64,000 nucleotides of DNA from Phallusia mammillata (Eukaryota): assembly GCA_965637545.1 (NCBI GenBank), contig OZ281495.1, positions 7,998,001 through 8,062,000 of the forward strand, written 5' to 3'. The position numbers were made by a program, and so were the translations under genes. The notes beneath the pieces were generated by a model. That model saw only the letters and a program-made list of their open reading frames with translations, was not told where the DNA came from and made no database searches. Shown here piece by piece: positions 3,001-63,729 of the stretch. Position 1 is the stretch's first letter, and every line of letters starts with the position of its first letter.

Positions 3001-6000
3001 AGCTTAGTTCCGTGTCAAGCGATTTGGAAACACTTAAACAGCAACATACAAATCATCAAAGTTAGTGACTTAAACATCTGCTTAATGGTAAGATTTTAAA
3101 CCCTAAAACATGCAATGTTTTTGTATTCTACACCAGCTATGTGAAATAAAGACATTTTCAAATTTTGAGCCAATAACGTATTTTAAGTCATGCACGTTAC
3201 GAATGTAGTTAAAAAAACGGCGTTTTTAATCCGCAAAATGATTGATCCCCAAAACAACGACAAGATAGCTAATAATGTGTTTTTAAACCGTGCTCGGTGA
3301 GAATGTGATTAGAAATGCGGTGGTTTTTTGAACATAAATAACCCGTTTTCCTAGGTTGTTAGATAAAATGTATTGGATCGTGCAATCGAATTAATAACTG
3401 CCTTCGGTTCACCAGATGTGGCTGCAAACAATATAAGTTTCATTTGCAAAACTCAAAGCCGAGCTAAAGCAAATCTAAAACATCTTGAGCATCACGTAAC
3501 TCCTGACACCAAACAAACTACTTTACACAAAACCTTCCGCATAATGATTGATTCCAACTATAACGACAAGATAGTTTCTGTAAAACGATTTATCTTGAAA
3601 TAAGGTCGTATTTAGGTTTAATTAATTGATTGGTGCAACAATAGCAACATGTGGAGGTTTCATAAGCGTTGCTTATAGAAACAACCACATGGAAAATTGT
3701 ACAATGTATTTAAGATACTTCCTTTAAGCAGAATGCTTGTTGAGTTTCGACTCTTGAATAAAGTGCTGATAAGTGGATGGTCGGTTTAATATCATATCTT
3801 AATTATGAACAAATGTTGAACTTAAACAATCAAATTTTCTCCATGATCCTGCATTGATTAACATAAAAACCTGTCTACGTTTCAATAACTTATAGCCTCT
3901 CTTATATGTTTTTGAAATGAATCTTAACTTCAAGCGTTCCTGTCCCCTCCTAACTAACACATTCGCCGTATTTTGTCAGCATTGCATAAAAACCGTGTTA
4001 AAAATGAGTTTGTTGTAACGTAAGTATTTGTCTTATTCGTTTAGGCACATTGCAGCACAACATGTCATCCCTGGAATCGAAAATTTTTGACTTTCAAGGT
4101 AAAACAAAGACGCAATTTACATTTTCATTTGACCACAGTTCAAAAAGTGTAGCTTTGTCTTTGCTTTTATGTTTTTTATCGGGTTTCGGGCTTGTAATTT
4201 CTGATTCGGTCAGGTAAACAACAGGGTTGTCACTGATGTACGTTCACTGATGTATAAGTGTCAGTTTCATAATCAAAGTATTATCGTGTATCCATGTTTA
4301 AACATGTTTCCTCATCTAGCGATGAGTGCAAATTATTCGAGACGTCTCACCGGAACCAACAACAACATCGAATCTATTCAAACAACATTGATAGCTTTGA
4401 ACGGTAAAACTTTGTTATACTATTACCACGTTTCTTATGGTAATTTTGAAGGTGTGGAGTACAACTTGCAAATCCCACATATATGTGTTTATCATCGCGA
4501 AACCTTGATGTAAAACTTATTTGACACGTGTACCTGCTATTTTTTTCGGCTTGAAATAATTGTGGAAAAGTAACAAAGATAACCTTTATGGATTTGATGG
4601 TTGTGATAAAATACGCGACATGAAATGGTTTCGTGAAGCGTTTCTTGTCAAAATTACCACATGAAAAATTGAACAATGCAGTTAAGATACTTCCTTGTGG
4701 CAAATTGATTGTTAAGTGTCGACTCCTAAATGAATTGCTGGAAAGCGGATGGTCGGTTTAATATTACAACAATAAACTCTTTGCAACCATAAACTCCTTC
4801 GCACAAAAGGTTTCGCAAAATTAATAAAATGCGCTAGCCGAAAAGCGCTTTGAAAGTAAAACCATAATTTTGTCCCAGATCATATTTTCAAAAGTTTACA
4901 AATTCGAACAAGGTTTTTTTAAGCCAATCACAATGGAGAACGTTTGCGGGTCACGACTCATTTTAACCAATCACAACACAGCTTGCGTATTAGTTCTTTT
5001 ATTGTAGGACACCTGGTGTAGCAACCAATAGTCCTTAGATTCGAAATATGTTTAGCACAGTTTCGTAATGGTTATAAAAGGCTAAATGATTTTGTGACTT
5101 AAAATGAAAAAAATGTCAGCAGAATGGTGTTAAGTGTGAAAACACTCCATTCATGAAGCGTATATTGCACAAAAGTCATTTTAGACTCAATACAATTTTT
5201 GAGTGTATAAATTACCACATGTGAAGAATATAAATTATATGTGCATAATTTACTACCAGATAAAACCTAATGGGTTCACACCTTCAGTTCAACTATCCTA
5301 AGTGCATCAGTCTTTACCATGTTTTGACGCTAAAAATGTTTCTTTGTCCTCTTCATACACAACTGGCATAAAACATTGCATCGTCGACAATATTGAAGTC
5401 AAACCGCTCAGCAACCTGGAACGTGACGTAACGAAAACCCGCAAAATTGCGCTCTTGTGATTGGCTGGGCCTAGGAGTATAAGTTCGAAACCATTTTTGG
5501 AAATATGCCCCCGGTCGTTAGTTTGTTACTTTTTTATGCTCATGGGAGAAACAACGGCTGAATACTATATGCTTACAATGCGTTTGTAGTGATGTGACGT
5601 TGTTATGGATGTTTTGTATTTGTTTTCCAGACTGGGTACTTTTTAGTTGTGACTTTGAAAGTGGTTTGTGCAACTTCACTGATGATTTGAGCGCTGATTT
5701 TACTTGGACAAGGCATTCTGGGTCCACGCCTTCAGATGCTACAGGTCCAAGTGTAGATCATACACTTGGAACTACTGGAGGTTAGTACTCAAGTATGAAA
5801 AATGGGAGAAATAGTTAACAATACCAAAAAAGCCATATAACTTTAACATTTCTTAGATTTTACCTGCATAAAAACACATCTAAACTTGTTCAATTTACAA
5901 ACCACAATCTGACGATAAAATGCAGTGAAATAATCCAATTTTAATTAAGCTTGGTACTTTATACAAAAGCAAAAGTTATAAAATAACTTATACATTTTTT

Positions 6001-12996: not shown

Positions 12997-13541
12997 ACAA
13001 ATTCTTGGAAACACCCTAGATTAAGATTATTCCAACGATAGCAATGTTTGTTTGGATTTTGAACACATTTTGATCTTGGCTGAAGCAAATATTCTTTACT
13101 AAACTTTTATATAATCTTACCGAAAACTAAAGTGCTACAAAACCGACAGCGAAAATCAGAAGCAGGGAGAGAAGACACAACCACATCAGCTTCAGATTTC
13201 TTTGGACACTTTTCAATGCTTCCATCAGCTTTTTTTCACGGCTTTCGTTGTTTTTCATCTCGCGAATGCCTTGGTCCGTTTCTGCAAACGATATGACGAA
13301 ACGGATTTATCACAGAAACAATTGTAATGTTGAATGAGAAGCTTAAATCTCTGTAACCCAAACTATTTATTGTAAGTGATATCACTGACAGGAAAATAGG
13401 GGCCTACATCACTTCTTAATATTGTCTGGGGGTGTTATTATGGCAAAGAAAGATATATAAAATTAACTGCTTATAGTAAACAAAATTAGTGCCTGGAAAG
13501 ATTTAGCATATTAAGATTCAGCAAAATCATAAAATCCAGGA
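12997..13541 (-). repeat. Inverted duplicate of 15294-15838, including a dead copy of the gene B TM exon (13281-13121)
   Basis: Near-exact reverse complement; the TM exon copy has a TAT>TAG stop. Confidence 0.95.
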
Positions 13542-15065: not shown

Positions 15066-18000
15066 ATGACTACATCGGACAATGACACGCCTGGAATTCC
15101 GATGGACTTTTTGCGAAACGGTACGTAGCAGTTTTTTAATCTTATTTGCACGAAAGAGTACATAACCTAGAAATGCCGAATTTATATTAGGGACAAACAG
15201 ATCATTTTCCCGAACGTTTGTTGTGCACAAAGCAGCAAAAACTGGTTTTCCCGCAAAATAAAATGGTTCATAGGATAAAGATAACAAAATACATCCTGGA
15301 TTTTATGATTTTGCTGAATCTTAATATGCTAAATCTTTCCAGGCACTAATTTTGTTTACTATAAGCAGTTCATTTTATATATCTTTCTTTGCCATAATAA
15401 CACACCCAGACAATATTAAGAAGTGATGTATTTTCCTGTCAGTGATATCACTTACAATAAATAGTTTGGGTTATAGAGATTTAAGCTTCTCATTCAACAT
15501 TCAACAATTGTTTCTGTGATAAATCCGTTTCGTCATATCGTTTGCAGAAACGGACCAAGGCATTCGCGAGATGAAAAACAACGAAAGCCGTGAAAAAAAG
15601 CTGATGGAAGTATTGAAAAGTGTCCAAAGAAATCTGAAGCTGATGTGGTTGTGTCTTCTCTCCCTGCTTCTGATTTTCGCTGTCGGTTTTGTAGCACTTT
15701 ATTTTTCGGTAAGATTATATAAAAGTTTAGTAAACGTTAAGAATATTTGCATCAGCCAAGATCAAAATGTGTTCAAAATCCAAACAAACATTGCTATCGT
15801 TGGAATAATCTTAATCTAGGGTGTTTCCAAGAATTTGTGGGTTAGATCAGTGGTCGGCAACTGCCGGTCCGCGGGGAATTCGTTACCTGGCCGTATACAT
15901 TTTCAGTTTAAATGCTATGAAACATTTTACCCATGTATCCCGGGGATGATAAACTAATTTTGGCGTTTTCATTGCTAAATATTTGTAGTTTTTTTAAGTC
16001 CGGTCCGCGATCAAATTTCAGTTTTAAAAACGGTCCCCAGTTCAAAAAAGGTTTCCGACCCCTTGGTTAGATCATCGTTTTTATCAAAGAATTCAGAAAC
16101 GTTCGGAATTAGACTTGTCATAAAGCAAAACTCTAAAGTTAAAAAAACATTATATTCAAAGACCATCGATATCTTGAAAAAAATCTATACTTAAAAGCGT
16201 ATCTACCTTTGCAAAATGCTAAATTAAGACAAAACCCTTGAAGCTGCAAAGAAAGATGGGGAATTTGTAGGTCATTTGAATTTCGTGTACTGGTTTACGA
16301 ATAGGACTAAATTCGCATTCATTTCGAATATGTTTGATTTACATGTTAGATTTCTGCCAAAATGGAAATAGAAATCAGAAAAGGTAATCACCAACTATCA
16401 TTGACAAATCAACAACTTTCTGGAGCTTCTTTTCATGATGAATTCAAAATCCCGAAAAGTATGTGACTTAAAAGCATTTGACTTCCTTTTGATTGATTTA
16501 ATCCACGATTTTAATGAAAAGTTAAAGCAAAAATAAACTCATAATACTGATTTAAAAATGATCAATTTCGTTTTACACTAATAACTGTTTCAAAAATGAA
16601 ATAATCAATTTCGTTCTTGTTTAACATTGTTACATAAATTTCACTTTACAGGCGATGTACAGATGGACATGCGAAAAATGGAGAATGATTTCAAAAGCTT
16701 ATTGAGTCAAAATTCTAAATTTCAAGGTAATTGTTGTTTTATCTTCTTTTTCACTTCAGTCTGGTTGCATTAATTTGTCTGCGCATAATATGTCGTCTGG
16801 TTTAAGGTTTTAAACCTTAACTTTCCAAGACTTTAAGTTGGCAAGTTGTAAGTTTGGCCAGGCTTTTAGGGTCAGATTTTGGTTTTCAGTTTGAATGAAA
16901 CGAGACTTGTCGGTCATAATTGTGTCGTTATTTTACTTTCATTTCAAATTTGAAACTCATTCGGCCTGTATTAAATAAACTGGGTTTATGATCGCCTGTA
17001 ACTCTTAAAATTCAGTAAACAACAACATTAAACAAATGTATTGTTCGGTCTAATTTTGTGAGCATTTACGTTTTCAGATTCGGTTCAACACAACTTGACG
17101 GCGATTGGTGACGGTTTGGCGAGACTAGAAAACGCTTCAAGAAATACAGAAGGTAAAATGGAAAATACCGTTTTAATGTTTAACCTTGATCTGGTACGAA
17201 TTCAGTGAAAACAGACCCACCAATGACAGTAGATAGTTGTGAAACCTGTATTTCAGAAACCAATATTGTACATTCCATAAAAGAGTTATGTTTTGTGCCA
17301 TTTTTTGTTAATTTGCAAAAGTCTTTTGTTTTTGCAGAGGTAATTGGGGCCAGCTTTGCCCACTTCACTCGTGACTGGCAATTGGCTAAGATTGAACTCC
17401 GTGTCATGAAAGGTAAACTTAATTACAATAAATTTCTTACTGTGCAGTGTGAAAAAAGCGTATGTCTTAACATTCATAATAACAAAGTGGATAATTGTTT
17501 TCATGTACTTATAGATACCATACATCACAACCTAAGTGATTTTGTCGGCATGTTAAACAAAAGAGAAATCAAGCAGGTAATAAAAAAAACATTTCACATT
17601 TCTTAAATCAAATTGTTGTGCTTCTTGGATGTTCACATATTACACTTTGTGCGTAAAACTACATCGAAACTGCCAAATGCCATTTTACAACTTCGCCATT
17701 TTTCAGACCTCGTTCAACACAACCTGTCCGTTATCACTGATAGCTTGGCTAGACTTGAAAGCGGTGTCACAAATGCGGAAGGTAACATTAGGTGTTATAC
17801 AACAGTTGTTGTTTGACGCAGAGCTGTAAGTCGGGCTGGGTTAGGGTCGGGTTAGGGCTTGGGTTTCTTAAAAACGGACTTGCTTGGGGCCTCACTTTAC
17901 ACTCTGTGTCATTTTTTTTCAAATAGCTAGTTGCTGGACCTAACCTATTGTCAAACAGCCCTAAAACGCCTTGTTTAAAACTGATTGTCTAATGTGTTTT

Positions 18001-21000
18001 TTTGTTTGTTATTTTGGTCTTTCCAGAGGCTTTAATGTAGGCCTATCAATCAAAATTCCGGGCCAAAACGGGCTTCTCATGAACGATTCGGGTTCTCTGG
18101 TTCGACGTTTTCATGTTACACCTTTGTTATAAAACTCTGAAACAAAGACATATTGAAAATATAATTGATTAACATATTTCAAACTGCAAGTGTCATTTGT
18201 TATCCATTCTATTATGGACTGTACTTTTGCAGGATAGGATATAAAAATCGGATAATTGCATTTATATTGTTTAAAACCAAATCTTTAGCTTTTTTTAACT
18301 GATAATACGATTTGTTTAATTCTCTCTTCAAGTATAAAGCGATCCTAAAATTGTCATACATAAAATCGTTTTTGCATTTAAAATAACTAAAAAGTTAGCA
18401 TAAAATACCAAGCTGCACTTTATATTTTACAACACTTCCCCCTCATAAAACGGTTTATAAGCCGACCGCCTAATCAAATGCCGATTAAACGAGGTTCGCA
18501 TAATTAGGAAGCCCTGCATTACCATGTTTTGTGTTACGAATTAAGCTAAGCAACTGTATAGCGCAATAACATTTGTTACACAAATTCGTCAAAGTAATTT
18601 GTTTCACAGGGTTGCTTCAGAATAGTTTAACTAACTCTAGCTGCGACTTGCAATCAGTTTCAGAAGACTTGGGTGATATGAAGGGTGAACTAACTTAAAT
18701 GTAACTTATATCACCCAAGACTGTATTTTGTTTCGTATATATTTCCCAAGAAATACCCAAGAAAAAGCGGTTTTTGTTTTTGCAGAAGAGTTGAAGACCA
18801 ACATTACCTCGATATCAATCAATGTTAACGCTTTGCAAGCCCAACACACAACGAACGGAGGTAAAAGTGTTTCCGTGAAAAGTTTCGTGAATTTTAAATG
18901 TTAGCTTTCCTAAACAAGTTATATAAGTTTGGCCAGGCTGTTTGGACTTGGTTCAGTTTGGGGTTTCAGTTTGAATAAACCGAGCTACGTTCGAAAATGG
19001 CGTTACGTTATTTAACTTTTCATTGTACCATTAGGTCTAATTTCAGGCATGTACGTTTTCAGATTTGGTTCAACACAACTTGACGGCGATTGCTGAAGGT
19101 TTGGAGAGACTAGAAAATGCTTCAAGAAATACAAAAGGTAACATGGAAAATATCGCATTGATGTCTAACGTTGGTCTGGTACATATGTATTAAACATTTT
19201 GACCCACTGACGCTAATAGTTAGCTGTGAAAACTGTAATCCGAGAAACCAATAAAGCACTTTCCATAACAATGTGATGTTTTGTGTCTTTTTTGCCTATT
19301 TGTAAAAAGCTTTTTGTTCTCAGAGATAATCCAAGTCAGTTCAGTCAACTTCACGCGCGACCTGCAATCAATAAAAAAAGAATTGCGCGGCATGAAAAGT
19401 AAACTTGTAAAAATGACAATTGTATTTTTAAGGATATTTCTTACTGTGCTGTGTTACAAAATCGTATGTAACAACATTCATAACAGCGAACTATTTTTTC
19501 ATGCTTTTAGATATTGCACACCACAACCTAACTAAAATTGTCGACATGCTGGTGGTTGAACTGACATATTAAGTTATACTTTATAACTACAGCGAAACAG
19601 CTGTCAACTTATAACTTTGCCATTTCGCCATTTTTCAGACTTAGTTCAACATAACCTGACCGTTATAACTGGCAGCATGTCTAGGCTTGAAAGCGGTGTC
19701 ACAAATGCGAAAGGTAACATTCGTGTACAACAGCTGTTTAATATTTGTCTGTTACAGTAGTTCGTTAAATAATATGTAGACACCTATGCTAGATCCTTAA
19801 GAAGCTTTGCGCTTCACATTTTATCACACTGCCAATAAAACTGTTTATAAGCCGACCGTATAATCAAATGCCGACAAGGAAGCCTTCTATTAGCATGTCT
19901 CGTGTTACAAATTACGTTTAGCAAGTGTATAGACCAATAACTTCCGTAATGTTTTACGCGAATCAGTCACAGCCATTTGTGTTACAGAGTCGATTCAGAA
20001 TAATTTAAACAATGTCAGCTACGATTTGCAATCAGTTTCACAACACTTGCATGACATGAAAGGTAAAGTAACTTACATGATAACTTGCTGTAAATTGTTT
20101 CGTTAACATTTTTCTTTGACTGTTTCAATTAATCAAGTTTAAAGAGCTCTTCTGGCAAATGTGATTATATTCCGACGTTTCGACGTCCGATACAGGTCGT
20201 CTTCATCAGGGTAAATAACACTAATGAAGACGACCTGTATAGGACGTCGAAACGTCGGAATAAAATCACATTTGCAAGAAGAGCTCTTTAAACTTGATAC
20301 TATGCATGGCAGCAATAGCTTATATGTTTCAATTAATGTTTTATTTAAGATATTATGCACTACAACTTCACTAAAATTTCAAATATGGTAAAAAACGGAA
20401 GAAAAGATGAGAAACGTATTAAACAACTTGTTTGTATATTGATCAAATAAATGTCAATAAAATTGGGTTAAAAGTATATGATTTAAGGACATTTTACCTA
20501 TCAAGTACAAAAATTATTATTACTAACTCATGTTTGAGACGCGTTCATTTAAACTTCTTTCGTCCGTTTGGACTCGATTTGAAGATTAGAATATTTTCTG
20601 TTCTTGACTATTATTTACTTGTATAATATATCTGTTGTTTCTTTAGATCAAATGCAGCAACTAGGTACTATAACTAAATCATTGAGTTCAATACAAAATG
20701 CCTCTCACAATTCCACCAAACAACTACAAATCGTTGGTGAACAATCGTATTTGATTCTTCAAACACTTGGAAACATTTCTCAAACTACAGCAAGTTCAGA
20801 GAAATATCTTAAAGGTAATGTCGTTATTTCTTTTGTTGTCCTACGATTATAGTGGTTACGTCAATGTTCCCCTTATGTTGCGTGCCTATACAACGCAAAA
20901 CGGTTATGCTTAACTGACATATAGAACTGATAATAACACAGGGATTGTTTGCACTCAACGTTTTTTTACTATGTACAAGGTCTTTGGCAGTTTTATTTTT

Positions 21001-24000
21001 GATTAAGCTATGTGCGTTACTGGCTGTGTTCCCAAACGACAATGTGATTTGTTTGTCAAAAAAACGGTTTTTAATCCTTCAACAATCACAGATTCAAACT
21101 ACCTAATTTAAAACACATAAAGAGCGATTTTAGTAAGCGTCAATTCGAGAGACGACAAAGAGAGTTCTTAGATAAAAGTTAAATTAGGGCCCACGCCTAC
21201 TTTCTCTCCGAGCATTCCATTCAATCCTGGAAGTAAACACCACAAAGGGATACAATTACTTACAGCACGATCTTTTGTTACGAATAAAACGCTTAACCAA
21301 CAGTTATACGTTGTAGTTTTTCAGACTTTGTGTCTTTAGTGGTCAAACTATAAATAAATTTATCAAACAATTTCGGAATTGTTTGTTACATCAGACACCC
21401 CAAGTTCGGACATAATACATGACAAGTTTAGACCAACCCTAGACTCCTTAGCTTCGGCACCTATGCAGCTAGCCTCTGGGTGTTTAACATAAATAGGTTG
21501 GCCAACAAACTTCAGATTATGTTTGTAGGCGAAACATCCCTTTTAATTTGAAAAAAATAGTGTAAAAGTAGGCTGTTGGGTAAAAATATGGAGATTGGAC
21601 CACATAATTTTGCTCTTGTGGTTTAAGTAAGTTTTTCAACTAACAGTTTATCGCAAATACTACAATACTGTGTTCAAATTTGACACTTGTGAACCTAGAG
21701 TCAAGAGTCACTGCGATAAGCCGACAATTAGCTTTCTTTCATTAGTTCGTGTTTTTCAGGTTTGCAAAACAACTTAGTGCAACAAAACAACGATCCAAAC
21801 ATGGGGAGTCTGTCTGTTGAGAATAGTTTAAATTTGTTGAAAAGTAAAATTAAAAAAGAAACAAATGCCCAATAAAAAGTGGTTTTTGTTTTTGCAGAAG
21901 AGTTGAAGCACAACATTACCTCGATATCAAATAATGTCAACGCTTTACAAGTTCAACACACCACGAACGAAGGTAAAAGTGTTTTCGTGGAACGTTTGAT
22001 GAATTTCCGTCTCTTGCTGTTTGCATTTAACCAACAAACCTAAAAATTTTAGGATTAAAAAAATATTTCAAACACTGTTTGACGTTGTAGCTTTTTGGTT
22101 AACGGTGTTAGATGGTAAACTTGTAAACAAGATCCAAAATTGATTTTTTTTACATTATTGCGGTGTATTCAAGATTAACTTAACATTAATTTAACTATCA
22201 CCCAGCAATGAATGCAAACTATCTACAACGTCTCACTACTACAAACAACAACATGGAATCAATTCAAACAACTTTGACAGCTTTAAAAGGTAAACATTTT
22301 TTGCCATGGCCGAATTATCATGACAAAATTTAAAGCTGTCCGATACAAACAGGCTTGCAATATCACGATTTAATACTTAATCGAAATTTTAAAACGTATA
22401 GTTCAGTTGGAGAGAAATCTAAGTTCGCTGTCACGCAGTTCGAATTCAATCCGAATTAAAGTTATCTAAGTCAGTTTCACAAACTTCTACTCAATAATGT
22501 TTATCGTCATTAACCAAATGCTCTTTCCAGTAGTTTTCATTTCATAACGTTTTAAAGTAACGCAGCTATTTCCGGCTTGCTGATTTGTCAGGACAATTGT
22601 GTAGCTATTTTTTTGCAGTCGGTATTGGTCGTTGTCAACAAACAATTTTCACTTTCCTATAGTAAGAGTCGAACCTTAATGACGTAATGCCGAAAGGTCA
22701 TGAGTATCATATGATCCATCGACACAATGGGCTTCTTTACACAATAGGTTTCGAAATGATTAGTTATAAAATAGCGTTTTGAAACGTTATAGCAACAAAA
22801 AATAAAGTTAATATGCTTCCTTGAATTTTATACAACAAGGAAAAACAATACATAAGACTGGGTGCATGCGTTTTTTCCTGTAGCAAGCTAAAATCCCAGC
22901 CCGACTTACAATTTTATTTCGCCTGCTGGATTATTTATTGTTTAGATTTTTCCGCTTGTAAAGTCAATAACTTTAGTATTATTTTGCAAATAAGTTCCTC
23001 TTCTTTGGTGCTATGTAGTTTAACTTTATCCTTGTAGTTTTTTTGGAGGGAACGAAAAGCAAATCTTGTTTGTCAAAAACGTAGACAGCTATGCGAGGGG
23101 AGCTTTTGGCTTTGTTCCTTTCAAATATAATGAGACCACGAAAATATTAATTCTTGCACAAGTTTGTCATTGTGAAGACTCTGCAATGCACATTACGGTG
23201 TTTCCGAACTAAGATTTGTTTTCCTTCTTGCTTTTGGTTTCTTCAAATCTATTAGATTGAGTCACTACCCGACTTCGTTGAGTCATGTGCGCAGTTGTGG
23301 CTTACAGGCACATCTTTTTGCATTTAAATGTGACTTAGTAGTTGCCTTTAGTAAAATAACGAGTAAAAATATCAATCTAGATTCTAGACTCTAGACTACT
23401 TCCGTCTTTTGAATATGCGTTGACTAGCCAAATTAAACTTCAAATCAAAATAAACGAGCGTAATAGGTCGCTCATATATTTTTCTGGTTTAACTTGACTA
23501 AATAAAGATATGGGCCTACACACGACAAAACACATTTTTCAAGGAAACTATAAATGACTTGTAACTTTTTTGTTAAGGAACGTTGCAGCACAATATGTTA
23601 ACTCTAGAACCTGGATTTTCAACGTTACTACGTAAAACGAAGTGAATTATTCTCTATTTGTAATTCGAAAACATACGCAAAGTAGGCTAGTATAAAAACG
23701 ATGAAAAAGCAATCAGAGAAAAATACTTTAAATATACATTTTCCGATGTCAGTAGTTCTCAAATTGTGCGTCTTTTCAATTTTTAAATGGCATTTCGGTA
23801 TAGTTCCGTTTCGTAACTTTTTGTTGTTGCATCAATAAACACATCTTCTATATTAAGTTTCCTCATTAACTTTTATTTGCTGGTGCGTCGCAAGTCTAGA
23901 AAACGTTTCCAAAAGGTGTTGTACAAAAAAAGTTTGAAAACCACTGCTATATGTCATTAGATAGCTCTAATCTTTTTCTATAAATAAGAGAAAAATATTT

Positions 24001-27000
24001 GTGATTTCGTGAAAGGTTTCGTGAATTTTGAAACTTGGCTTTCCTAGACAAGTTGTAAGTTTGGTCACGTTTTGAGGACTTGGTTCAGTTTGAATGAAAC
24101 TAGCTTGATTTATACATGCTAATCCTCATTTGTGTCGTTATTTTACTTTTTCACAATTAGGTTTAATTTCGACCTATATTTGTAAAACTTGGTTTAGAAT
24201 CGCTTGTAAAATCGCTTGCAAAGTCAGTAAGCAACAAATTAAATGAATTTACTGTTCAGTCTAATTTTGTCAGCATTTACGTTTTCAGATTTGGTTCAAC
24301 ACAACTTGACGGCGATTGCTGACGATTTTTCGAGACTAGAAAACGCTTCAAGAAACACAGAAGGTAACATGGAAAATATCGCAATGATATCTAACATTGG
24401 TCTGGTACAAATCCAGTAAAACTTTGACCAACTGCTAGTAGTTTGCTGTGAAAACTTAAATTCGATAAACCAATTAAGCACTTTTTATAACAATGTGATG
24501 TTTTATGGCATTTTTTGCTAATTTTGCTAAAATCAGCCTTACAAAATCGTTTATAACAACATTCATAATAACAAAGTATTTTTTCGTGCATTCAGATATT
24601 AAACACGACAACCTAACTAAAATTGTTGACATGCTACATAAAAGGGAAAATGAAGCAGGTAATAAAAACATGCAATGTTGGTTAAACTAAATTGTTGTGC
24701 TTGTTGGATGTTAACATATTAAGTTATACTTTGATTCTTAATTGTGGGTAAAAGTGTAGAGAAACAGTTGCCAACTTATAACTTTGTCATTCGTCATTTT
24801 TCAGACTTAGTTCAACACAATCTGTCCGTTATAACTGGCAGCTTGTCTAGGCTTGAAAGCGGTGTCACAAACACGGAAGGTAACATTGGGGTACAACAGT
24901 TCTTTAGTGTTTATATGTTACTGTAGTTCGTTAAATAATACATAGACACTTATGTAAGATCCTTAATAAGTTTTGCGCTTTACATGTTATCACATTGTCA
25001 GCCAATAAAACTGTTTATAAGTCGCCCACATAATCAAAGGCCGACAAGGAAGCCTTCTATTAGCATGTCTCCTGTTGCGAATTGCGTTTAGCTAGTGTAT
25101 AGGCCAATAACTTCCGTTGTGCGTTACGCGAATCAGCCAATGCCATTTGTTTTACAGAGTTGCTTCGGAATAGTTTAACCAATTTCAGCTCCGAATTGCA
25201 ATCAGTTTTACAACACTTGCATTACATGAAAGGTAAATTAACTTAAATGACAACTTGCTTTGTATTGTTTCTTTAACATTTTTCTTTGACTGTTCAAATT
25301 CATGTTTTGTTTAAGATATTATGCACCACAACTTTACTGAAATTTTAAAGATGGTAGAAAACGGAAGTAAAGATGGGAAAGGTATTGAACAACTTGTTTC
25401 AATTCCTGATATCAAACAATTGCTACCAAAATTGCGTTAAAAGTATTTAAGTCAAGAACATTTTACCCACCGAGTAGTTTTCAACTTTTTTGGTCCATGT
25501 GGACTCGATTTGAAGATTAAAATATATTTACCGTTCTTGACTATTATTTACTTGTATAATATATCTGTTGTTTCTTTAGATCAAATGCAGCAATTAGGTA
25601 CTATAACTAAATCATTGAGTTCGATACAAAATGCGTCTCACCACTCCACTAAACAACTACAATCCGTTGATGAACAATCGAATTTGATTCGTCAAACACT
25701 TGAAAATGTCTCTGAAACTACAGCAAGTTCAGCGAAATATATTAAAGGTAATGTCGTTAACTTTTTTATTGTCTGATGACGTTATTGCTAACGCTTGCCA
25801 AACGACAATATAATTGTTTGTCAATAAAAACCAAACGATTTTCATTTGTTTAACAGTCACGGATTCAAACTACCTAATTTGTAAACACATAAAGAGCTAT
25901 TTTAGTTTCAAACGGAAATGTGCACCACGCCAAGCATTCAAATCAATTTTAAAAGTAAACGCCACAAGGGATGCTTTTTGATTGACGAAAGACTTTGTAG
26001 AGTTACGGAGGGTTTTTCCTTGGTTAAAATTATCTCAAACACTGTTAGACATTGTAGCTGTTTGGTCAATGATGTTAGATAATAAACTTGCAAAACAAGA
26101 TCCAGACTTGTTTTAAGACATTTTCATATCGCTGTATATTTAAGATTAACTTAACATGCTTCTATCATCCAGCGATGAATGCAAACTATCTACAACGTCT
26201 CACTACTACAAACATCAACATTGAATCCATTCAAACAACTTTGACAGCTTTCAAAGGTAAACCTTTGTTGCCAGTGCCTAGTTATTATGACAAAGTTTAG
26301 AGCTGTCTAATTATAACAGGCTTGCAATACCACGTTTTAACATATAATTGAAACTTTAAAACGCAGGCCAATTGCAGAAAAATCTAAGTTCCCTATCAAG
26401 CATTTTGGGGTCAATTCAGGATCAACATTCAACTTATCAAGGTCAGTTACACAAACTTCTACTCAATAATGTTCATCCGTCATTAACCAACTGCCTCTTC
26501 CAGTAGTTTGCACTCCATAACGTTCTAACGTGACGCAGCTATTTTCGGGTTGCTGATTTGTTAGGTCAATCGTGTAGCTAAGTTTTTTTGTAGGCAGTAT
26601 TGGTCTGATTGTTGTAAACAACAACTTTCAGTTTTATCAGTCAGAGTCGAACTCTAATGGCCTAATGTCGAAAGGTCACGAGTATCATATGACCCATCGA
26701 CACAATGTACTCCTTTAAAACGATATGTTTCGAAATGATTAATTCTTGAAAAGTTGCAGCATCAGCAAATGAAGTTAATATGCTTCCTTGAATTACATAC
26801 AACAAGCAAAAACAATGCATAAGACTGGGTGCATGCATTTTGTAGGCACTGTAGCAAGCTAAAAGCAATTGTTTGTTTGTTTTATATTTTGATCCTCGTT
26901 AAGCCGAACAACGAATAACCCGAGCTCAACCCAACGCAAAAAGCTCAGCCCCACTTGCAACTCTGTTACTCCTGCTGGATCATTTATTGTTTAGTTTATT

Positions 27001-30000
27001 TCCACTTGGTAAAGTCAATGTTGTTGTTGTTTCGAGGGAATGAAAAGCAAACCTTGTTTGCCAAAAACATCACAACGTAAACAGCTGTGCGAATGGAGAT
27101 TTTGGCTCTGTTCCTTCCAAATATTTCCCGGTAATTAATAAGAGCACGCAAACATTAATTCTTGCGCAAGTTTGTCATGATGAAGACTCTGCAGTGCACA
27201 TTTCCGTGTTTGCGTCAAGATTTGTTTTCCTACTTATTTTCGGTTTCTACAAATCTATTAGATTGAGTCACTGCCCAACTTCGTTGGGTCATGTGTGCGT
27301 TGTGGCTGTCAAACAAACCTTTTTTACATTTAATTGTTATATAGTACTTGCCTTTAGGAAAACAATGAGTAAATACATCAAACTGGGCTACTTCCGTCTT
27401 TCCACTTCCCGTTGACTACATGGCCTTAAACACTGGCGTAATTAGTCGCTAAAACACTTTCCCGGTCCTGCTTTTAACTTGACTAAATGCTTTAATACAC
27501 TATACTCACATACCACCGAAAATTTATTTCAAGATTAGTTAAATAGTAAAAAGGACAATATACACATGTGGGTCTACACACGACGAAACATATTTTGCAA
27601 GCAAACTATAAATGACTTGTAACTTTATTGTTCAGAAACGTTGCAGCACAACATGTCAACTATAGAATCTGGATTTTCAACCTTACAAGGTAAAGAAAAT
27701 TAAATTCTTGCTAATTTGGAATTCGAAAACATACGCAATATAGGCTAGTATAGAAACGATGAAAAAGGTGTCAGGGAAAAAAATTATATCTACATTCTTG
27801 CATGTCATAAAACAGCCCCAATTTTTTCCTACATATAAGAAAAACAGATTTCTTAATCATTCCAACGATTATCTCAACAGAAAACTTGTCCAGCAGGCCC
27901 ACAATAAGCCCGTCAAAAGTAGAATGTCCAATACAAAGTAAGTTCTTCTTATCATTATAAACCAAACACATTTTTTTCTAGAGCAGTGGTTCCCAACCTG
28001 GAGTTCGCGGACCCCCAAGGGGTCTCTGGAATGGTTTTATAGCAGTGGTTCCCAACCTTTTTGTAGTCACGGACCCCTTTTGTAAATTTTATTGGTTCGC
28101 AGAACCCCAACGTAATTTAGTCTTTTTTCGTTTCCTACGTAATACGTTATTATACTATTTTTTATGGGGGGCAGAATTTTAATCAACCTTCACAATCCTT
28201 TAAAGATTAAATCTCAATAAACCACTGTAATTTAGAAGTCAATGCATAAATTTTCTAGTGTACAAAGAATTCTATTGTTAATGTGTGTTGTGATGTCACA
28301 AATGGAGGTAATAATCTTAAGTTTACCTGATCCAAGGGTTTGATAAACAGTTTGCCGTTATATACCCGATTGAAAAAACGGTTTGGGAATTTAAAAATAA
28401 TGTACTGTTGTTAATGCTACTACAAATGTTTGCCTCCACGGACCCCCTGAAACTATCTCACGGACCCCTTGGGGCTCCGCGAACCCCAGGTTGGGAACTT
28501 GTTTTAGAGGGTCCGTAGACGCAAACATTCTTAGTACCATTTACCAAAAGTACAATATTTTAAAAGTTTCCAAACCGTTTTTACCATCCCGCATACCAGT
28601 ACAGACTGTTATTAAACCTTTGGATGAAGAAAACTTACTTTTTGTATGATCCTTACCCCCATTGTGACATCACAACACATATAAACAATATATCTTTTAT
28701 CGTATATTGCTTTGTTTTAAGTATTCCACACCAGAAACTGCATTTCTTTGTTGCATTGACTGCTACAATACAGAACTTTATTGATATTTAAGGACTGTGG
28801 CCGTTGATTAAATATCTGCCCCCAAAAGCGAAAATATGATGCAGGAAACGAAAAACATAACAAGACTAAATTACGTAGTGGGTCCGCAGACCTATCAAAT
28901 TTATTAAAGGGTCCGTGACTACAAAAAGGTTGGAAACCACTGTTCTACAGTACAGTGCCTACAGGCCAGTCAAAAATCCAGGCCGCTTTAAAATCAGTAG
29001 AACACTGATAATTCTAAGATTTTACTTGGCAACACTGATTTTCGAGCCACTTATAAAATGTGTCTACAGGCCAGATATGCTTAATCCGGCACTGCTGTTC
29101 TAGAGCAATGTTTTAAGAGCATATACTTTTTGAAGGTTTTTTATTCTTTGATGCACTTTCCAATTTCGCGTCAAGCACATTTCCACGCAGTTTGCCCAAT
29201 TACTACGAGTTTAATTACGACGGAAGAAACAATTACAGCATATATGATGGGGGCAATGATATGTATGACACAGGAAATAAGGTACAGTGTTTGGCCTATA
29301 TATTTTGTACTAATAGGTTACTGGATTGTAAGTTGAAACGTAGGTCAACAATGAACGATAGGAATTATTAATTTTAGTTAATTTCGCCTAAATTATAAAC
29401 ATAATTTCTTTTTTGCTAATTTAGCTTAAAGTCTGGAGAAACAACGAACCGAAAGTGCAAGTCATTTACAATTCGACTTACTAGTAAGTGCCACGGTAGT
29501 AGAACTTTTTTATAACAACATAAAATTATAACAACATAAAATTGTATGAGGTTGGTTTTGATAAAAACCGGCTTGGTTCGAACCAAATGGCTCACTGGTA
29601 ACTGTTTACAATCTAAACGGTAAATAGCATCCAAGTTAGTGACTAGGCCTACATGCGCGTCACTGGCAGCTGACGGGGCTTATGTGACACGAGTCGGTAG
29701 AGCTACTAACGTAAGAACTCACAGTAGCCAGGTTTGGAAATTTCCGATAGGTGACGCAACGGAGCATAGGCGTTTACAATGCTGACACGGCAATTATTGT
29801 CACCGTAAGCGCCTGTGATCCGTTGCGCCACCTACCAAAAAATTCCAAACCTGGCTGCTGTGAGTTTCTTTGTTAGTAGCTCTACCACACGATTTACTGA
29901 AATGGCTTAGCTTGCATCATACTTGTCACTGGCATGTGACTTGCATGACAGATGCCAGTGACAAAAGCTAACACGTTATTCGTGCCACATGAACCATTAT

Positions 30001-48482: not shown

Positions 48483-50664
48483 ATGAATACACAGAACCGT
48501 GATCTGCCTGGAATGAAAATGGAACAAAATAACTATGGTATGTAGGATTTGTTTTGTTTAAGTTGAAGATAAATCTTAAATTTCAAAATCTTGGCTGGAT
48601 GCGGGCTTGACCTAAATATTTTTGTTTGCCCTGAGACGATGTTAACCCGAATCAGATCAACTTCTGGTTTGCAGCGAGTTATGTTTAAGGGCAACTTTAC
48701 GAAAAAAAATCAAGCCGAGCTTTTTTTATTAATTACAATTGAGACAGTTACAAGCCCAAGTTCCAACTTTTGCGCATTTTCTACATACTTGTAATTTATT
48801 CCAATATGTGTGTACACCCGGTGTGTGGTTTAATTTGTTGCGTACAGTCTGACAACCCGGAGATTTTTTGTATATGTGCGTGTAAAGTGACAAAATTTAC
48901 GTTAACTGAACATACGACTAGTGTTCGGCCTTATTCAGGGAAAAATATTCAGGTTTAGAATAGGTTTTCTACATGTACTTTCGGATTCGACTGAAAATTT
49001 GCATTATTGTGTGTAAGTTTTCTAAGCTTCCGTACTTTTGAGAGCGTTTATTCAGAGCTGTTTTTGTTGCAATATTATGAACCACCCTCGAAACCTTGCA
49101 TTTTTGTGTCCCTTTCTCCTAACTCTTGTGTCTTTCGAAACGTATCACCAATGCTAGTTTTATCCAACCAGCAATTAAGTTACATTGTGTGTATCTTTCT
49201 ATTGATATTGGTTATCTCTAGCTGCATAACAATATGATGCAATAGATAATATGCCGATGTAACGCACTTGCTCAATGTTGACATCACTAAAAAAAAAAGA
49301 AATTTAGTTTACAAGGTTTTAAACATATCAAGTCACATAAACTTCTCATGTTGTAATATTTTTTACTTTGTTTTGTACTTTGCAGAAACGTTTCAAGGCA
49401 CCCCTGCAGTGAAAAATAACGAAAAACTTGAAAAGATGATGATTGAAACACAAAAAAAAACACAACTCTTCATTTCTCGGTACGACTACGCAACAGAAAG
49501 TCTTCTCCGCGTTAATGTTTTAAACACATCGGTTTCAGGTCATAATCAAACTATTGTCGTGTATCCACATTTTAACCTTGCTTTCTTTTAATCAGCAATA
49601 AGCGCAAATTATTCGAGTCGTCTCACCGCAGCAAACAACAACATCGAAAATATTCAAACAGCATTGGCAGCTTTGGAAGGTAAAATTTAGTCTCGTTATT
49701 AATGTACCGTTTTAGGCTCTGGGGCGATCCTACGAAACTTATATAAGTTTATCTTGCGAAACTTTAATTTTAAACATTTTCGATACTTACCTAATTTATG
49801 TTTAGTCGAGTCTGTTGTACAACTTGCTGGGGGGGTATTTTTGAAAGGAGTTGATTAACAATTGTTGAGTTCGTTTTAAAGCAGAACAAATTTGAAATGT
49901 GCTTGAAAGCTAAGTTTCGCGTTAAAGTTCAAACAATAACTGATTGGAAATATAAAAAAAAGATTGCTTTGCAATTGAGCGAGAAAATCGAGGTGTTAAG
50001 AGGAACTAATCGATTGTACAATTGCCTATAGATATCATGGATTTTAGGTTGTGGAATAGTTACAGACTTGTAACTTAAAATTTCATACTTTTTCTAAAAC
50101 AGTTTGTTAGGACATTTAAAAGGAAATACTTTGAGTTTTTTGGTAAAAGTTTGGAAATTTCAAATCCTAGGTCAACTGGAGAGAAATCTAAGTTCACTGT
50201 TCAGCAGTTTGAAATCATTAGATTGCAAATTAAGATCTTTTACAAACATTATGCAACAACAACTATCATAATGTTTAAAAGAAATATTATGCCATTGAAG
50301 TTCTGTCTGCAACAAGTAGACAGCTAAAAAGGCCTTTTTTTAAGGGACGGTTTGTATGGTTACAAGTTTGAATACAAACCTACGTTCCAAATGATATTGT
50401 GGTACAAGAAATACAGCATAAAGTGATAACCTTGCCCAAAATTCGTTGCTATTTAAGTCACTAGTTTTTGTCAGATGTAACACTCAAGGCAAGGGTAAAC
50501 AGCAAACACTGGTTTGCGTTTAGCCATAACCTAAGGGACATAATGATTAATAAAAAAAAATGCTGATGATTTGAGCGCACATTTTACTTGGACAAAGCAT
50601 TCCGGGTCTACGCGTTCACGTGGTACAGGTGCAAGTGCAGATCATACACTGGGAACTACTAAAG
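48483..50664 (+). pseudogene. Gene E: deleted C-type receptor remnant lacking the TM
   Basis: Exon 1 48483-48537 intact; exon 2 49386-49479 is 67 nt shorter and lacks the TM; stalk exon 49596-49679; 5'-truncated MAM exon 50563-50664; no further MAM exons. Confidence 0.8.
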
Positions 50665-52483
50665 GTAAGTACTCAAGTATCTTGCAAGAAAAAAGGGAGA
50701 ATTAATCAACAGAACTAAAAAGTGCCATACAACTTTTATATTCGTGCCAATCTAACTCCTTAAAAACACACTTAAACTTGACATCATCACATTTGTACGT
50801 CGGAAACCACAACGATACATAGTAACGACCCCTTGGTATCTATAACTACCAGTCTCCATATGAGCCTTTTGTGCTTTGGAACGTAACATGTCCTCACAAG
50901 AATGCAGACACACGGTCATTAATTCTGATATTATTGTTTTAAGTTGTTGTTTCTTGAAACGCGAGTCGCCACAGAAAGTTGTGTTGAATATTTTAAGTTT
51001 TTGTGGGTCACCTGTAATCGTAATTTGTAAAGCTGTTTCAAATTTGGTTCTTAATTATCGTAAAAAATGTTACGTGTTTATAATCGTATTGTGGAAACCT
51101 CTTTTGCATGTTTATATCCGTGTGTAACGAAGCGGGCGTTTTGCCTTTTTTCTCGCTCTGTCGTTGTCGCCTTATAAGCGAGTTTTTCCTGTTGCGCGGT
51201 CTTCTATTATTGAACTGCTGTTAAATAAATCATCCGCTTTCGTATAAAGTTGAAAGCATTTGCGTTTTTGATTTCAGTGTTTCCAATTTTGGTTTGCTTA
51301 CAACTTTTAAAAATCGAAAAAAATGTAACTTGCCTAAACATTTAACGCATGTTTTTGACTGCACCATTTTTATTTCATTTGCAATCACGTATTTATCTTC
51401 AAAGTGTGCTGTAAATAAAGAAAAATTGCACTTTGATTTAAAACTGCAGTTTGTCAGGGAGTTACCATGGATTAAATCTAAAGCAATAGCTTCGTATACG
51501 AAACACTCATGTGTTATTGTCTTAAAGTAGGAAATTCTTAACCAGGGGTTGCATACTTGTTTCTAGTGGGTGCAAAAATGCTGAATTATTGGGATCGTTG
51601 AATAACAGGTAATTCCAAGGTAACGAATCAGTTTCACAAACAATAGCATCAAAAAGTGAACAACCATCGTTTTCAGTTTTAACTTTAACTGGTGTGTAAT
51701 AGATAAAATATAAATAGTAAAACCGCTGTACCATGTTATAGTTTTGAGAAACCTCGTATTGAATTGTGATAAACCAGCCAAGGTTTTTGTTCCATAGGTA
51801 AAGGCAAGCTCGTATTTAAGGCCCGACATCGAAATTTTAAAAGTTAAAATGTGAAATTAAAAAGTGAAAAAATAAAAGTGAAATTTTGGCGCATAGGATG
51901 ACGAGTGTGAAGCCAGGCTCATTATAAGCCCGTTCCATTCAAACTTCAGCCCGAAGCCGACAGAAAAGGGGCGGGCTAATTAAAACTTGTGCTCAATGAC
52001 GAAGAAAAGGTTTAAATGCAAAGATTCCAACAGAGCTTAACCAGTCACAATGTGTAAAAGAAAAACGACAAAAGTCAGGTCAACCTTCACTTTGTATCCA
52101 CAACTAGAATGATTGTTTCGTTCGCCTGTGACTGCAATACGACAAACATACTGTTTATTATAAGTTATACACAAAATTGCTCTTGGTTATAATTAAGTGG
52201 CAAAAACACTTTTTTTAGTTTGTTAAAATGTTGCACCTGGTAATTGAAACATAGGTGCATTTTAATAAACAAGAAAAAAGCTTTCTTTTATTTAAATTAT
52301 TAGCCGAAAATATATCAGGGTGCAAATGTTGGAAACCAATCCGTGTTATCCAAGATACCCAGTCGCTTTTTGCACTACAGCGGTTTTTTATTCCGAACAA
52401 AGATTTGTGACGGAAGTCTGACACTAACTAGCGACAGAGAGCTGAAGGCAGAAAACCCTTCGCTGAATGTAAACTCTCATCTA

Positions 52484-61700: not shown

Positions 61701-63729
61701 AAAGTACTAAATGACTATCAAACGTTGAAAGATAGAATGTATTCCAGCAAATGTTTACAGAGCTGCATCGACTTTGCTGCATCAATTCTTCTAGCAACCG
61801 CCTGGCCAGAGCGAGGATTTTCGACTCTATGTCGTATTAAAACCAAGCAACGAAATAGGTTACTGGATATCACCCTGAATGCTCTAATCAACATTTCGAT
61901 GAACGGTCCGGAGCAGCTCACAGACGAGGATGCACAAAAGATAGCTGAAAAGTGGCAAAAAACAAAGGACCGACGAACAGTGACAGTGCAAGCATTGAAG
62001 GAGTTAGAATCTGCAAACAACGAAGAAATGGAAGCTGGCGGATGGGAACGGGATTGCGAATCTGTTTTATTGCGTGAGATAGAACCTGAAAAAAATGTTC
62101 TGTGATTGTGCACCGCCAGTAGCCTAATAAATAATTCGTTTAAGCAAATATGGCTATTTGGGTATTTAAATGAAACACTTGCGGTCTCTTAAAACTACTT
62201 AGCGGTTACCCAAACCACCTTAAATAAACCTGCATGGGAGAAACAACGCCCAAATGCTATATGCTTACAATGGTAGCATTGTGACGTTGTAGATAGAGGG
62301 GATGCTTTGTATTTGTTTTCCAGTTGGGAAACTTTTCAGTTGTGACTTTGAAAGTGGTTTGTGCAACTTCACTGATGATTCGAGCGCTCATTTTACTTGG
62401 ACAAGAAATAACGGGTCCACGGCTTCAGACGGTACAGGTCCAAGTGTAGATCATACACTGGGAACGACTGGAGGTTAGTACTCAAATATGAAAAATGGGA
62501 GAATTCATTATTAATACCAAAAAAACCATATAACTTAAACATTTTTTAGATTTTACCTGCATAAAAACACACTTAAACTTGTTCAATTTGCAAACCATAA
62601 TCTGACGATAAATTTTTTTGAAATTATTTCTTCACTAAATGCTTTATGTTTTTAAATAGGTCACTACATGTACATTGAAACGAGTGACCCTCGACAAAAT
62701 CTTGACAAAGCAAGAATCGTTTCACCAATGTTGCCACCAACCAATGGTAAAAAATATATTATTCTCCATGTCATTATCTTTTTTTGGTGGATCAATAATA
62801 TAGTTGTTTGTTATGTAGTGATTTAATTTTATTCCCAAAAACACAAATTTTGCAAATTTACAGACTAAAGGTATTCTTTAACGCACAAATGTTAAACAAA
62901 GACTTGTTCAAACGGTTTGCAAACATATTTTTTACAGTTGTAGTGAATTCGGATTTCTAGTGCTTATATATATTTTTTAATTGAGGTTTCTTATTTAATT
63001 GAGACACAATGCAAACGTTGTATAGACCAAATATACGATTCTAAAACTGCCATTGCTCCACGAATTAATTCCAGGAAGACGGTTTGGGTAATCTTACGCG
63101 CTTTTTTGCTGGTTTAGACACTAAATATGCCTCTGTGTAGGAAAGTAAACCTCGGTCAATCCAGACCCATTTGGACCAAAACAATGTTGGTATATGACAA
63201 AAACACAAATTAACTGATGTCAATTAGTTAAAGCTTTTCCACACTATACACTCCACACAGTTAAGCTTAATTAAGCCTATAAACGATTGATTATGTGTTT
63301 TTAACTAGTTGTTGTTTTTTACGTTATCATGCATCAAAAAGTTATTGAAATGAATGTTTTTTTACAGGTCAATGCCTTAAGTTTTACAACCATATGTATG
63401 TAAGTATTAGAAAAACTACTTACAAAAACAATTAAATCGCTTCAAAGTAACATTTAAGACTGTTTAATGACTTGCAAATCCACACCTTGGCAAGTTAAAA
63501 ATGATTTCAGATTTCACTAGAAATGACGATGTTCTTTTTGCAAACGACAAAAAAAATCAAAAACAATCATACTTCTCAATACCTAATAGGGCACCGTAAA
63601 TCTCCTATTTAAATACATTAAACGACACAGATTTGTTTGTATAGGGCAACCACATTGGAACATTGAAAGTCTATTTAAAGAGACCAAATCGTTCCAATGC
63701 ATTAGTATGGAGTCTGAGCGGCAATCAAG
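52707..63729 (+). CDS. Gene D (3'-partial): chimeric type II receptor, B-type tail/TM/stalk + A-type MAM head
   Basis: Exons 52707-52761, 53121-53281 (TM), 53887-53920 (or -53995), 54160-54234, 54590-54664, 55908-55970, 56105-56179, 58809-58883, MAM 62324-62473, 62660-62746, 63368-63399, 63645-63729; last exon is beyond the window. Dead exons at 55363 and 55721 contain stops. Confidence 0.7.
54747..55070. mobile_element. hAT-type MITE
   Basis: CAGAGTTGT / ACAACTCTG termini; perfect 8-bp TSD tgctagta; partial duplicate at ~55410-55600. Confidence 0.85.
56692..56739 (-). ncRNA. Minimal type I hammerhead ribozyme motif in Penelope pLTR
   Basis: ttaccCTGATGAa-gacgacct-gtat-aggacgtc-GAAACGTC-ggaataa on the minus strand. 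Confidence 0.7.
58686..58733 (+). ncRNA. Hammerhead motif with core substitution (CCGATGA)
   Basis: taccCCGATGAa-gacgac-ctgtttca-gtcgtc-GAAACGTC-ggaataa. Confidence 0.5.
60633..62105 (+). mobile_element. Degenerate hAT transposase (ZNF862-like, hATC dimerisation domain)
   Basis: ACDRAAAMIG (DGAxxM-like), VHCHAHRL, LEERFP, ERGFSTLCRIKTKQRNRL; split across frames with internal deletions. Confidence 0.85.

Follow-up and report, generated by a model that had tools for sequence, protein, structure and literature searches.

In a 64-kb stretch of the Phallusia mammillata genome (assembly GCA_965637545.1, contig OZ281495.1, positions 7,998,001 to 8,062,000 of the forward strand; this whole stretch is the window referred to below), we found that gene B, the second of four tandem genes of a receptor family, carries a stalk that is written one mini-exon at a time, with exon lengths that hold a hydrophobic helical stripe in phase along the entire stalk. 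Judged from its reading frames, gene B is the gene of a type II membrane protein, with a short tail and a transmembrane (TM) helix at the N terminus and the head at the C terminus. Between anchor and head lie 25 intact stalk cassettes (16652-27689, + strand), each of which is flanked by AG and GT, has no stop in frame, is a multiple of 3 nt in length and has phase 1-1 boundaries. We consider it probable that these cassettes form a glycosylated helical stalk with one exon per unit, in which register-keeping cassettes have been spread by unequal crossing-over. The modular and register-preserving nature of the gene B stalk is well supported by the data below, and the description of the stalk as a helical rod patterned in heptads and hendecads is supported.

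The exons of gene B, with cassettes named by type (T1 to T13), are as follows.

15571-15708, + strand: exon 1, open reading frame (ORF) for a 23-aa cytoplasmic tail and TM helix (type II anchor), ending in phase 0 with a GTAAGA donor
16350-16383, + strand: exon 2, 34-nt adaptor ISAKMEIEIRK, phase 0 to 1, AG/GT, conserved with gene D at 53.85 kb
16652-16726, + strand: cassette T1, 75 nt / 25 aa, phase 1-1
17078-17152, + strand: cassette T2, 25 aa, phase 1-1
17338-17412, + strand: cassette T3, 25 aa, phase 1-1
17515-17576, + strand: dead T4 cassette, 62 nt, with a 1-nt deletion that would shift the frame
17707-17781, + strand: cassette T5, 25 aa, phase 1-1
18610-18684, + strand: cassette T6, 25 aa, phase 1-1, with GTGAAC as donor
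18786-18860, + strand: cassette T10, 25 aa, phase 1-1
19063-19137, + strand: cassette T2, 25 aa, phase 1-1
19324-19398, + strand: cassette T3, 25 aa, phase 1-1
19511-19573, + strand: dead T4 cassette, interrupted by an in-frame TAA and lacking a donor at the conserved site
19639-19713, + strand: cassette T5, 25 aa, phase 1-1
19988-20062, + strand: cassette T6, 25 aa, phase 1-1
20350-20415, + strand: cassette T7, 66 nt / 22 aa, phase 1-1, donor kept in three paralogous copies
20647-20814, + strand: cassette T8, 168 nt / 56 aa, phase 1-1, predicted by AlphaFold2 as one continuous helix
21760-21843, + strand: cassette T9, 28 aa, phase 1-1, the least regular cassette, containing DPNMGS
21898-21972, + strand: cassette T10, 25 aa, phase 1-1
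22206-22289, + strand: cassette T11, 28 aa, phase 1-1
22402-22460, + strand: dead T12 cassette, with an internal deletion and the GT donor lost
23578-23631, + strand: cassette T13, 18 aa, phase 1-1, a neck-type exon in mid-array, containing EPG
24289-24363, + strand: cassette T2, 25 aa, phase 1-1, opening the third partial run of T1-T13
24596-24658, + strand: cassette T4, 63 nt / 21 aa, phase 1-1
24805-24879, + strand: cassette T5, 25 aa, phase 1-1
25158-25232, + strand: cassette T6, 25 aa, phase 1-1
25316-25381, + strand: cassette T7, 66 nt / 22 aa, phase 1-1
25580-25747, + strand: cassette T8, 56 aa, phase 1-1
26173-26256, + strand: cassette T11, 28 aa, phase 1-1
26367-26441, + strand: cassette T12, 25 aa, phase 1-1, its splice sites being the weakest in the array
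27636-27689, + strand: cassette T13, 18 aa, phase 1-1, the final stalk exon before the head
29136-29282, + strand: first head exon, unnamed DGGxDMYDxGN domain, starting in phase 1

Fifteen of the intact cassettes are 75 nt / 25 aa long, and the remainder are distributed among the sizes 84 nt / 28 aa (three), 168 nt / 56 aa (two), 54 nt / 18 aa (two), 66 nt / 22 aa (two) and 63 nt / 21 aa (one), the single intact 21-aa exon being that at 24596-24658, with a frame-breaking sister at 17515-17576. The spliced stalk is 683 aa long, to which the 25 cassettes alone contribute 672 aa. As the head exon starts in phase 1, any stalk cassette can be joined to it in frame, and the array thus stays in frame from anchor to head. 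An alternative 84-nt reading of the exon at 20350 was dropped in favor of 66 nt because three copies retain the 66-nt donor, whereas the 84-nt donor is not conserved. The initial annotation of this DNA had assigned phase 1-1 to every intact stalk exon, which holds true down to the AG/GT boundaries, open frames and lengths divisible by 3, but its count of 21 cassettes has to be raised to 25; similarly, all the sizes that it listed (18, 21, 25, 28 and 56 aa) are present, but the 22-aa class (20350-20415 and 25316-25381) had been missed. Reckoning at ~0.15 nm per residue, it had viewed the stalks as molecular rulers of ~15 nm in gene C and ~85 nm in gene B; the former figure agrees with the gene C stalk of 102 aa in four cassettes, but the latter is too low, as the gene B stalk would reach ~100 nm with all 25 cassettes included in the transcript.

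Fourier analysis of the 683-aa gene B stalk revealed a single dominant hydrophobic periodicity of 3.552 residues (peak power 11.85), and the Kyte-Doolittle scale yielded the identical period (normalised power 48). Shuffling of residues within exons reduced the power to 0.91 ± 0.26, and insertion of random spacers of 0 to 6 residues between exons reduced it to 2.63 ± 0.69, with 0 of 500 trials matching the observed value; upon shuffling of exon order, the power was 8.0 ± 2.0 and the observed value was reached in 19 of 500 trials. The width of the peak (0.00125) is close to 1/N, with the power at 3.50, 3.60 and 3.67 residues being 1 to 4, which implies coherence across the whole stalk length. 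Together with the loss of the peak upon insertion of spacers, these data indicate that the stripe stays in phase over ~192 turns and is kept there by the lengths of the exons, as the initial annotation had proposed. The period also lies within the range of coiled coils (3.5 for heptads to 3.67 for hendecads) and is maintained over 683 aa. Coiled coils are known to tolerate 4-residue insertions (stutters) and hendecads well, whereas an insertion of 3 residues leads to strain, one of 1 or 5 needs to be delocalised and one of 2 or 6 breaks the helix (PMC4786415).

The same pattern is apparent within the cassettes. Among 61 distinct 25-aa cassettes, positions 3, 7, 10, 14 and 17 are occupied by LIVMF in 85-98% of cases, compared with 61% at position 2, 48% at position 21, 38% at position 24 and 18% or less at the others, and the 18-, 21-, 22- and 24-aa types start in the same 3/7/10/14(/17) register. 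The resulting core spacing of 4-3-4-3-4-3-4 bears out the earlier reading of the 25-aa unit as 7+7+11. Register breaks at most exon junctions, which had been named as an observation that would speak against a continuous register, were not seen with a simple Viterbi model: 13 of the 25 discontinuities are stutters, placed at one per 25-aa cassette, and just 2 of the 25 coincide with an exon junction, although this a/d register model is crude and its score is not a calibrated coiled-coil probability. The claim that any exon may be duplicated or deleted is correct for the reading frame, given that all are in phase 1-1, but not for the coiled-coil phase of a lone 22- or 56-aa exon, as can be seen from the phase advance of each exon length at the fitted period.

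25-aa exon: +13 degrees
18-aa exon: +24 degrees
21-aa exon: -32 degrees
28-aa exon: -42 degrees
22-aa exon: +70 degrees
56-aa exon: -85 degrees
Adjacent 22+56 pair (78 aa): -15 degrees

When single cassettes were deleted in silico, coherence per residue remained at 0.89-1.11 for 24 of the 25 cassettes, while it fell to 0.66 upon deletion of the 22-aa exon at 25316.

With respect to fold, AlphaFold2 modeled the 56-aa cassette alone as one helix spanning residues 2-54 (pLDDT 95.9), a prediction that covers this cassette only, the other gene B cassettes being shorter than 30 aa. Proline accounts for 0.3% of the stalk and glycine for 4.1% (28 residues), with S at 11%, N at 10%, T at 9% and Q at 8%. 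The stalk also harbors 26 N-x-S/T sequons, with the Asn residues positioned off the hydrophobic stripe (mean -88 degrees). The presence of Leu at a-type and of Ile/Val at d-type positions hints at three or four strands, and the most likely arrangement of the stalk would be a parallel multi-chain coiled coil. An oligomeric coiled coil, its rigidity, its length of ~100 nm and selection on exon length are what we infer. Other readings of the repeat were tried and rejected. A leucine-rich repeat does not fit the 25-residue unit, which lacks LxxLxLxxN and has a 4-3-4-3 spacing; apolipoprotein-like 11/22-mer amphipathic helices would have a period of 3.67 rather than the 3.55 found here; and a single alpha-helix (ER/K) domain is at odds with a charged-residue content of only ~19% and with the clear apolar stripe.

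Paralogous cassettes were surveyed by tblastn with the gene B cassettes over 264 kb of the gene cluster, made up of the window and a further 200 kb, in which 17 genes were mapped. All 154 cassette loci detected are on the gene strand; AG and GT are found at exactly homologous positions in 127 of them, and phase 1-1 boundaries were found for 139 loci in the 17 paralogues by a boundary-calling procedure that itself required phase 1-1. The cassettes belong to 13 types in a conserved order, T1-T13, with a total of 348 aa, and gene B comprises three partial runs of this series, consistent with the block duplication described below. Among the 139 intact cassettes, ~85% are 18, 21, 25, 28 or 56 aa long, another 10% measure 22 or 50 aa and the rest (5%) measure 23, 24, 30, 54 or 55 aa; the size rule is therefore not strict across the family. 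In gene B, the six size classes leave remainders of 4, 0, 4, 0, 0 and 1 upon division by seven, with five of six falling within {0, 4} (p ~0.009, a value that treats the six classes as independent when they are not fully so), and the Fourier test on the hydrophobic pattern is stronger evidence than this count. A 50-aa form of T8 was noted at L004:5404-5553, L012:1098-1247 and L015:3531-3680, with its acceptor located 18 nt further downstream, and a 72-nt (24-aa) form of T12 at L004:1460-1531 and L007:1039-1110 is the last stalk exon before a MAM head.

Based on these findings, we propose that the ectodomain stalk would be an extended alpha-helical rod carrying N-glycans, with each unit encoded by its own mini-exon, and that all cassettes may have been derived from one ancestor of ~25 residues with seven core positions (3/7/10/14/17/21/24), i.e. 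two heptads and a hendecad. Unequal crossing-over between cassettes and between paralogues would repeat or remove blocks of the T1-T13 series, with phase 1-1 everywhere ensuring that such events leave the frame intact. As the lengths of 25, 18, 21, 28 and 50 aa, and of the 22+56 pair, are close to whole turns at 3.55 residues per turn, the stripe would remain in phase while the rod grows or shrinks in steps of ~3-4 nm. We also entertained a further step, which we regard as unlikely, in which exon length has been selected for helical phase so as to yield interchangeable units of 18-28 residues (~3-4 nm) that set the height of the head from a few nm to ~140 nm, perhaps also via alternative splicing.

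Several of our observations weigh against a register-keeping rod and are best considered together with other explanations of the same data. One such explanation, to which we assign a low but appreciable likelihood, is that the length pattern reflects inheritance, all cassettes being copies of one 25-aa exon with no selection on helical register. The cassettes are visibly homologous and have been duplicated in blocks (the 19.0-23.75 kb segment onto 24.0-27.8 kb, at 80-90% identity); dN/dS between the two large blocks of gene B is 0.74 over 192 codons, pointing to weak constraint, with dS similar to intron divergence. Paralogues do hold 23-, 24-, 54- and 55-aa cassettes and show lower global coherence (power 4.0 for a 955-aa paralogue stalk vs. 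12.1 for the 25 cassettes, 672 aa, of gene B), and the young in-frame variants display no preference for steps of 3, 4 or 7 residues, being -1 (24 and 55 aa), -2 (23 and 54 aa), -3 (22 aa) and -6 (50 aa). The older differences that define the cassette types, however, are -7, -4, -3, +3 and a doubling, with none of +/-1 or +/-2, and coherence spans cassettes as unlike as 18, 21, 22, 25, 28 and 56 aa rather than 25-mers alone. The 22- and 56-aa exons, which are not phase-neutral singly, compensate each other as an adjacent pair, and the 50-aa T8, itself near phase-neutral, is found only where T8 directly follows T6 with no T7 copy (three paralogues), although some 56-aa T8 copies also adjoin a broken or missing T7. 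In addition, the phase-compatible variants (22 and 50 aa) exist in 3-4 copies, as opposed to 1-2 copies each of the 23-, 24-, 54- and 55-aa forms.

The composition of the stalk raises a different question, as apolar residues occupy only 59% of the stripe positions, N, S and Q residues are frequent in the core and the last third of many cassettes (positions 18-25) is polar. Given this occupancy and the glycine and polar stretches, the rod may be weak, marginal or segmented. Taken to its extreme, the stalk would be a string of short amphipathic helices, glycosylated and connected through polar, Gly-containing linkers, and could be flexible or folded back, in which case 0.15 nm per residue and the idea of a ruler would not apply; the 28 glycines, the DPNMGS and EPG motifs and the polar-rich composition all fit such a chain. 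We judge this arrangement to be improbable, since the peak is maximally narrow for 683 residues and centered at 3.55 instead of 3.6, which free linkers would not give, and since the 56-aa cassette is predicted to be an unbroken helix and proline is so scarce. Another proposition is that part of the gene B array is unexpressed, either because far fewer cassettes reach the mRNA or because gene B is a decaying copy. Three dead cassettes within gene B, the ~13% of cassette loci in the cluster that are broken, the neck-type T13 in mid-array at 23578 and weak splice sites at T12 and T7 are all in line with this proposition, as are three sequencing runs presumed to be RNA that were mapped, alongside one DNA run, on 19450-25449 and produced contigs over intronic high-copy repeats only and none over exons, a result that also counts against our own proposal. 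Nonetheless, all 25 cassettes keep their open frame, AG/GT boundaries and phase, the frame runs unbroken from the TM exon through the array to the head exon, and gene B is not alone, with three more long-stalk paralogues mapped; the 56-aa cassette is present in 18 copies in the genome, which points to at least two long-stalk genes beyond the four mapped in the census. On balance, we consider loss of expression of part of the array to be unlikely, and we retain the exon-per-unit helical stalk as the more probable account.

Two observations were made on the 6-kb stretch 19450-25449. The intronic repeats at 20050-20450, 22450-22650 and 23650-24050, with a word depth of up to ~3e5 in a DNA run, are the only parts of this stretch that lie under presumed-RNA contigs; they probably represent a high-copy element resembling a short interspersed element (SINE) or a miniature inverted-repeat transposable element (MITE). 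One contig of the DNA run (X2) joins 24704 to 24914 and skips cassette T5 (24805-24879), and may come from an allele without the T5 exon or from a paralogue lacking T5. We did not accept this contig as a polymorphism, as a paralogue without T5 may explain it and the reads were mapped at 90% likeness.

Stalk length differs widely among members of the family, and does so by whole cassettes. The number of detected cassettes per gene ranges from 1 to 34 in the 17 genes, amounting to 18-955 aa of stalk, with the lower figure of 18 aa counting only cassettes detectable by the search and hence possibly an underestimate; MAM heads and unnamed (DGGxDMYDxGN) heads are each found on both short and long stalks. 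In gene A, 1262-2629 and 3416-4782 are a tandem duplication with 99.4% identity, through which a block of cassettes of 18, 28 and 25 aa is present twice, a change in stalk length of very recent date. Likewise, the last four cassettes of a paralogue ~120 kb away (L013:891-2981, C2:8132891-8134981) are 96-100% identical in protein sequence to those of gene B (25580-27689), while cassette number differs in their front halves (25 cassettes in gene B vs. 29), a finding that points to recent gene conversion or partial duplication. These two cases imply that gain, loss and conversion of cassette blocks are recent and ongoing, and with all cassettes in phase 1-1, gain or loss of a whole exon cannot break the frame.

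In homology searches, eight exon peptides of gene B (cassettes and the first head exon) had no Pfam match above threshold, and a word search with the 56-aa cassette yielded zero candidates. A profile built from ten T8 cassettes, compared against 1.84 billion representative proteins, had two matches, both to bacterial S/T-rich repeat proteins over 19-24 residues; we rejected these as relatives and judged them to be compositional. In the literature searched, there was no description of this receptor family, nor of a stalk built from up to 34 mini-exons.

The closest counterparts in function are receptors of the CD23 type. In CD23, each 21-residue stalk repeat has an exon to itself; humans and mice have different numbers of repeats, and one of the stalk exons is missing from a mouse isoform. 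The neck of L-SIGN is polymorphic in length. CD23 (FCER2), langerin, DC-SIGN/L-SIGN and the Kupffer cell receptor are type II proteins like that of gene B, and in CD23-type receptors a glycosylated alpha-helical coiled-coil neck spaces the C-terminal head from the membrane and drives oligomerisation, with the heptad coiled coil of the CD23 neck trimerising the receptor (PMC6791321). Gene B shares with these receptors an N-terminal tail and TM segment followed by a heptad-patterned repeat stalk, but has no C-type lectin-like head, carrying in its place the unnamed DGGxDMYDxGN domain; other members of the cluster carry MAM heads. Judging from the absence of Pfam matches to the cassettes, there is no sequence relationship to CD23-type receptors, and the family differs from them in that 1) its heads are MAM or unnamed and not C-type lectin; 2) its unit is 25 residues (7+7+11) vs. 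21 or 23; 3) its long stalks comprise 25-34 exons and up to ~950 aa vs. 3-8 repeats; and 4) its units each have their own exon, unlike the repeats of DC-SIGN/L-SIGN, which all reside in a single exon.

Class A scavenger receptors (SR-AI/MSR1, MARCO and CL-P1/COLEC12) are also type II and N-glycosylated, with a long coiled-coil spacer and an exchangeable head, and we know of no exon-per-repeat array encoding their coiled coil. Unlike gene B, they combine a collagenous Gly-X-Y domain with heads of the SRCR or CTLD type; by inspection, with no dedicated scan made, no Gly-X-Y run was evident in the spliced gene B stalk. Among bacterial surface proteins, trimeric autotransporter adhesins (TAAs) and M proteins vary in repeat number and length by recombination between repeats. 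The stalks of TAAs (YadA, BadA and SadA) and the streptococcal M proteins are, like the proposed gene B stalk, long surface rods in which heptads, hendecads and other periodicities are mixed (PMC4786415). In contrast to gene B, they are prokaryotic and exon-less, their modules are unrelated in sequence, and TAAs are anchored at the C terminus. As for exon phase, symmetrical 1-1 exons predominate in the membrane and secreted proteins of metazoans, and permit in-frame duplication, deletion and head exchange (PMC7259759; Patthy; Franca et al. 2012). Phase 1-1, being usual for duplicated extracellular modules of metazoans, is therefore expected in gene B and not special to it. The usual 1-1 module, however, is a whole folded domain, whereas the module here would be a fraction of one continuous helix, which would place a second constraint, that of helical phase, on exon length.

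Coiled-coil stalks that space the heads of receptors are well known; the unusual part here is a stalk made of up to 34 mini-exons. Exons of nearly whole turns mean that duplication or loss of blocks keeps the frame and the hydrophobic seam together, and gene B would offer a clear example of gene architecture (exon length) being shaped by a structural constraint (helical phase). The cluster also provides a natural series, with the same heads on stalks that have 18-955 residues in detected cassettes, for asking if receptor height matters. If the cassettes were indeed units that set height, one recognition domain could be displayed at many heights, for instance to extend beyond the glycocalyx or tunic, or to allow size-based sorting of receptors where cells meet, and the stalk would then be a eukaryotic, exon-encoded counterpart to the length-variable adhesin stalks of bacteria.

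The four genes of the window, which is AT-rich with a GC content of ~35%, have the tail/TM exon in common and are positioned as follows.

From position 2, + strand: gene A
ATG at 15571, + strand: gene B
~34.65 kb, + strand: gene C
~53.1 kb, + strand: gene D

Across the 240-Mb genome, there are 43 copies of the tail/TM exon, nearly all within two blocks of contig C2; the cluster of ~43 genes occupies 7.95-8.17 and 8.51-8.83 Mb of C2, plus 0.90-0.91 Mb of C7. Between genes A and B, the segment 12997-13541 (- strand) is an inverted copy of the 5' end of gene B (15294-15838) with 96% identity, and the TM-exon copy inside it (13102-13257) carries a TAG stop; this segment resembles a pseudo first exon in head-to-head orientation. 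Between genes C and D, an orphan 28-aa cassette (49596-49679) and a MAM N-terminal exon (~50565-50678) lack an upstream TM exon and are probably a gene fragment. Within gene D, reverse-transcriptase ORF fragments and a 329-aa transposase-like ORF (56793-57464 and 61116-62105) are situated between the stalk cassettes and the MAM head exons.

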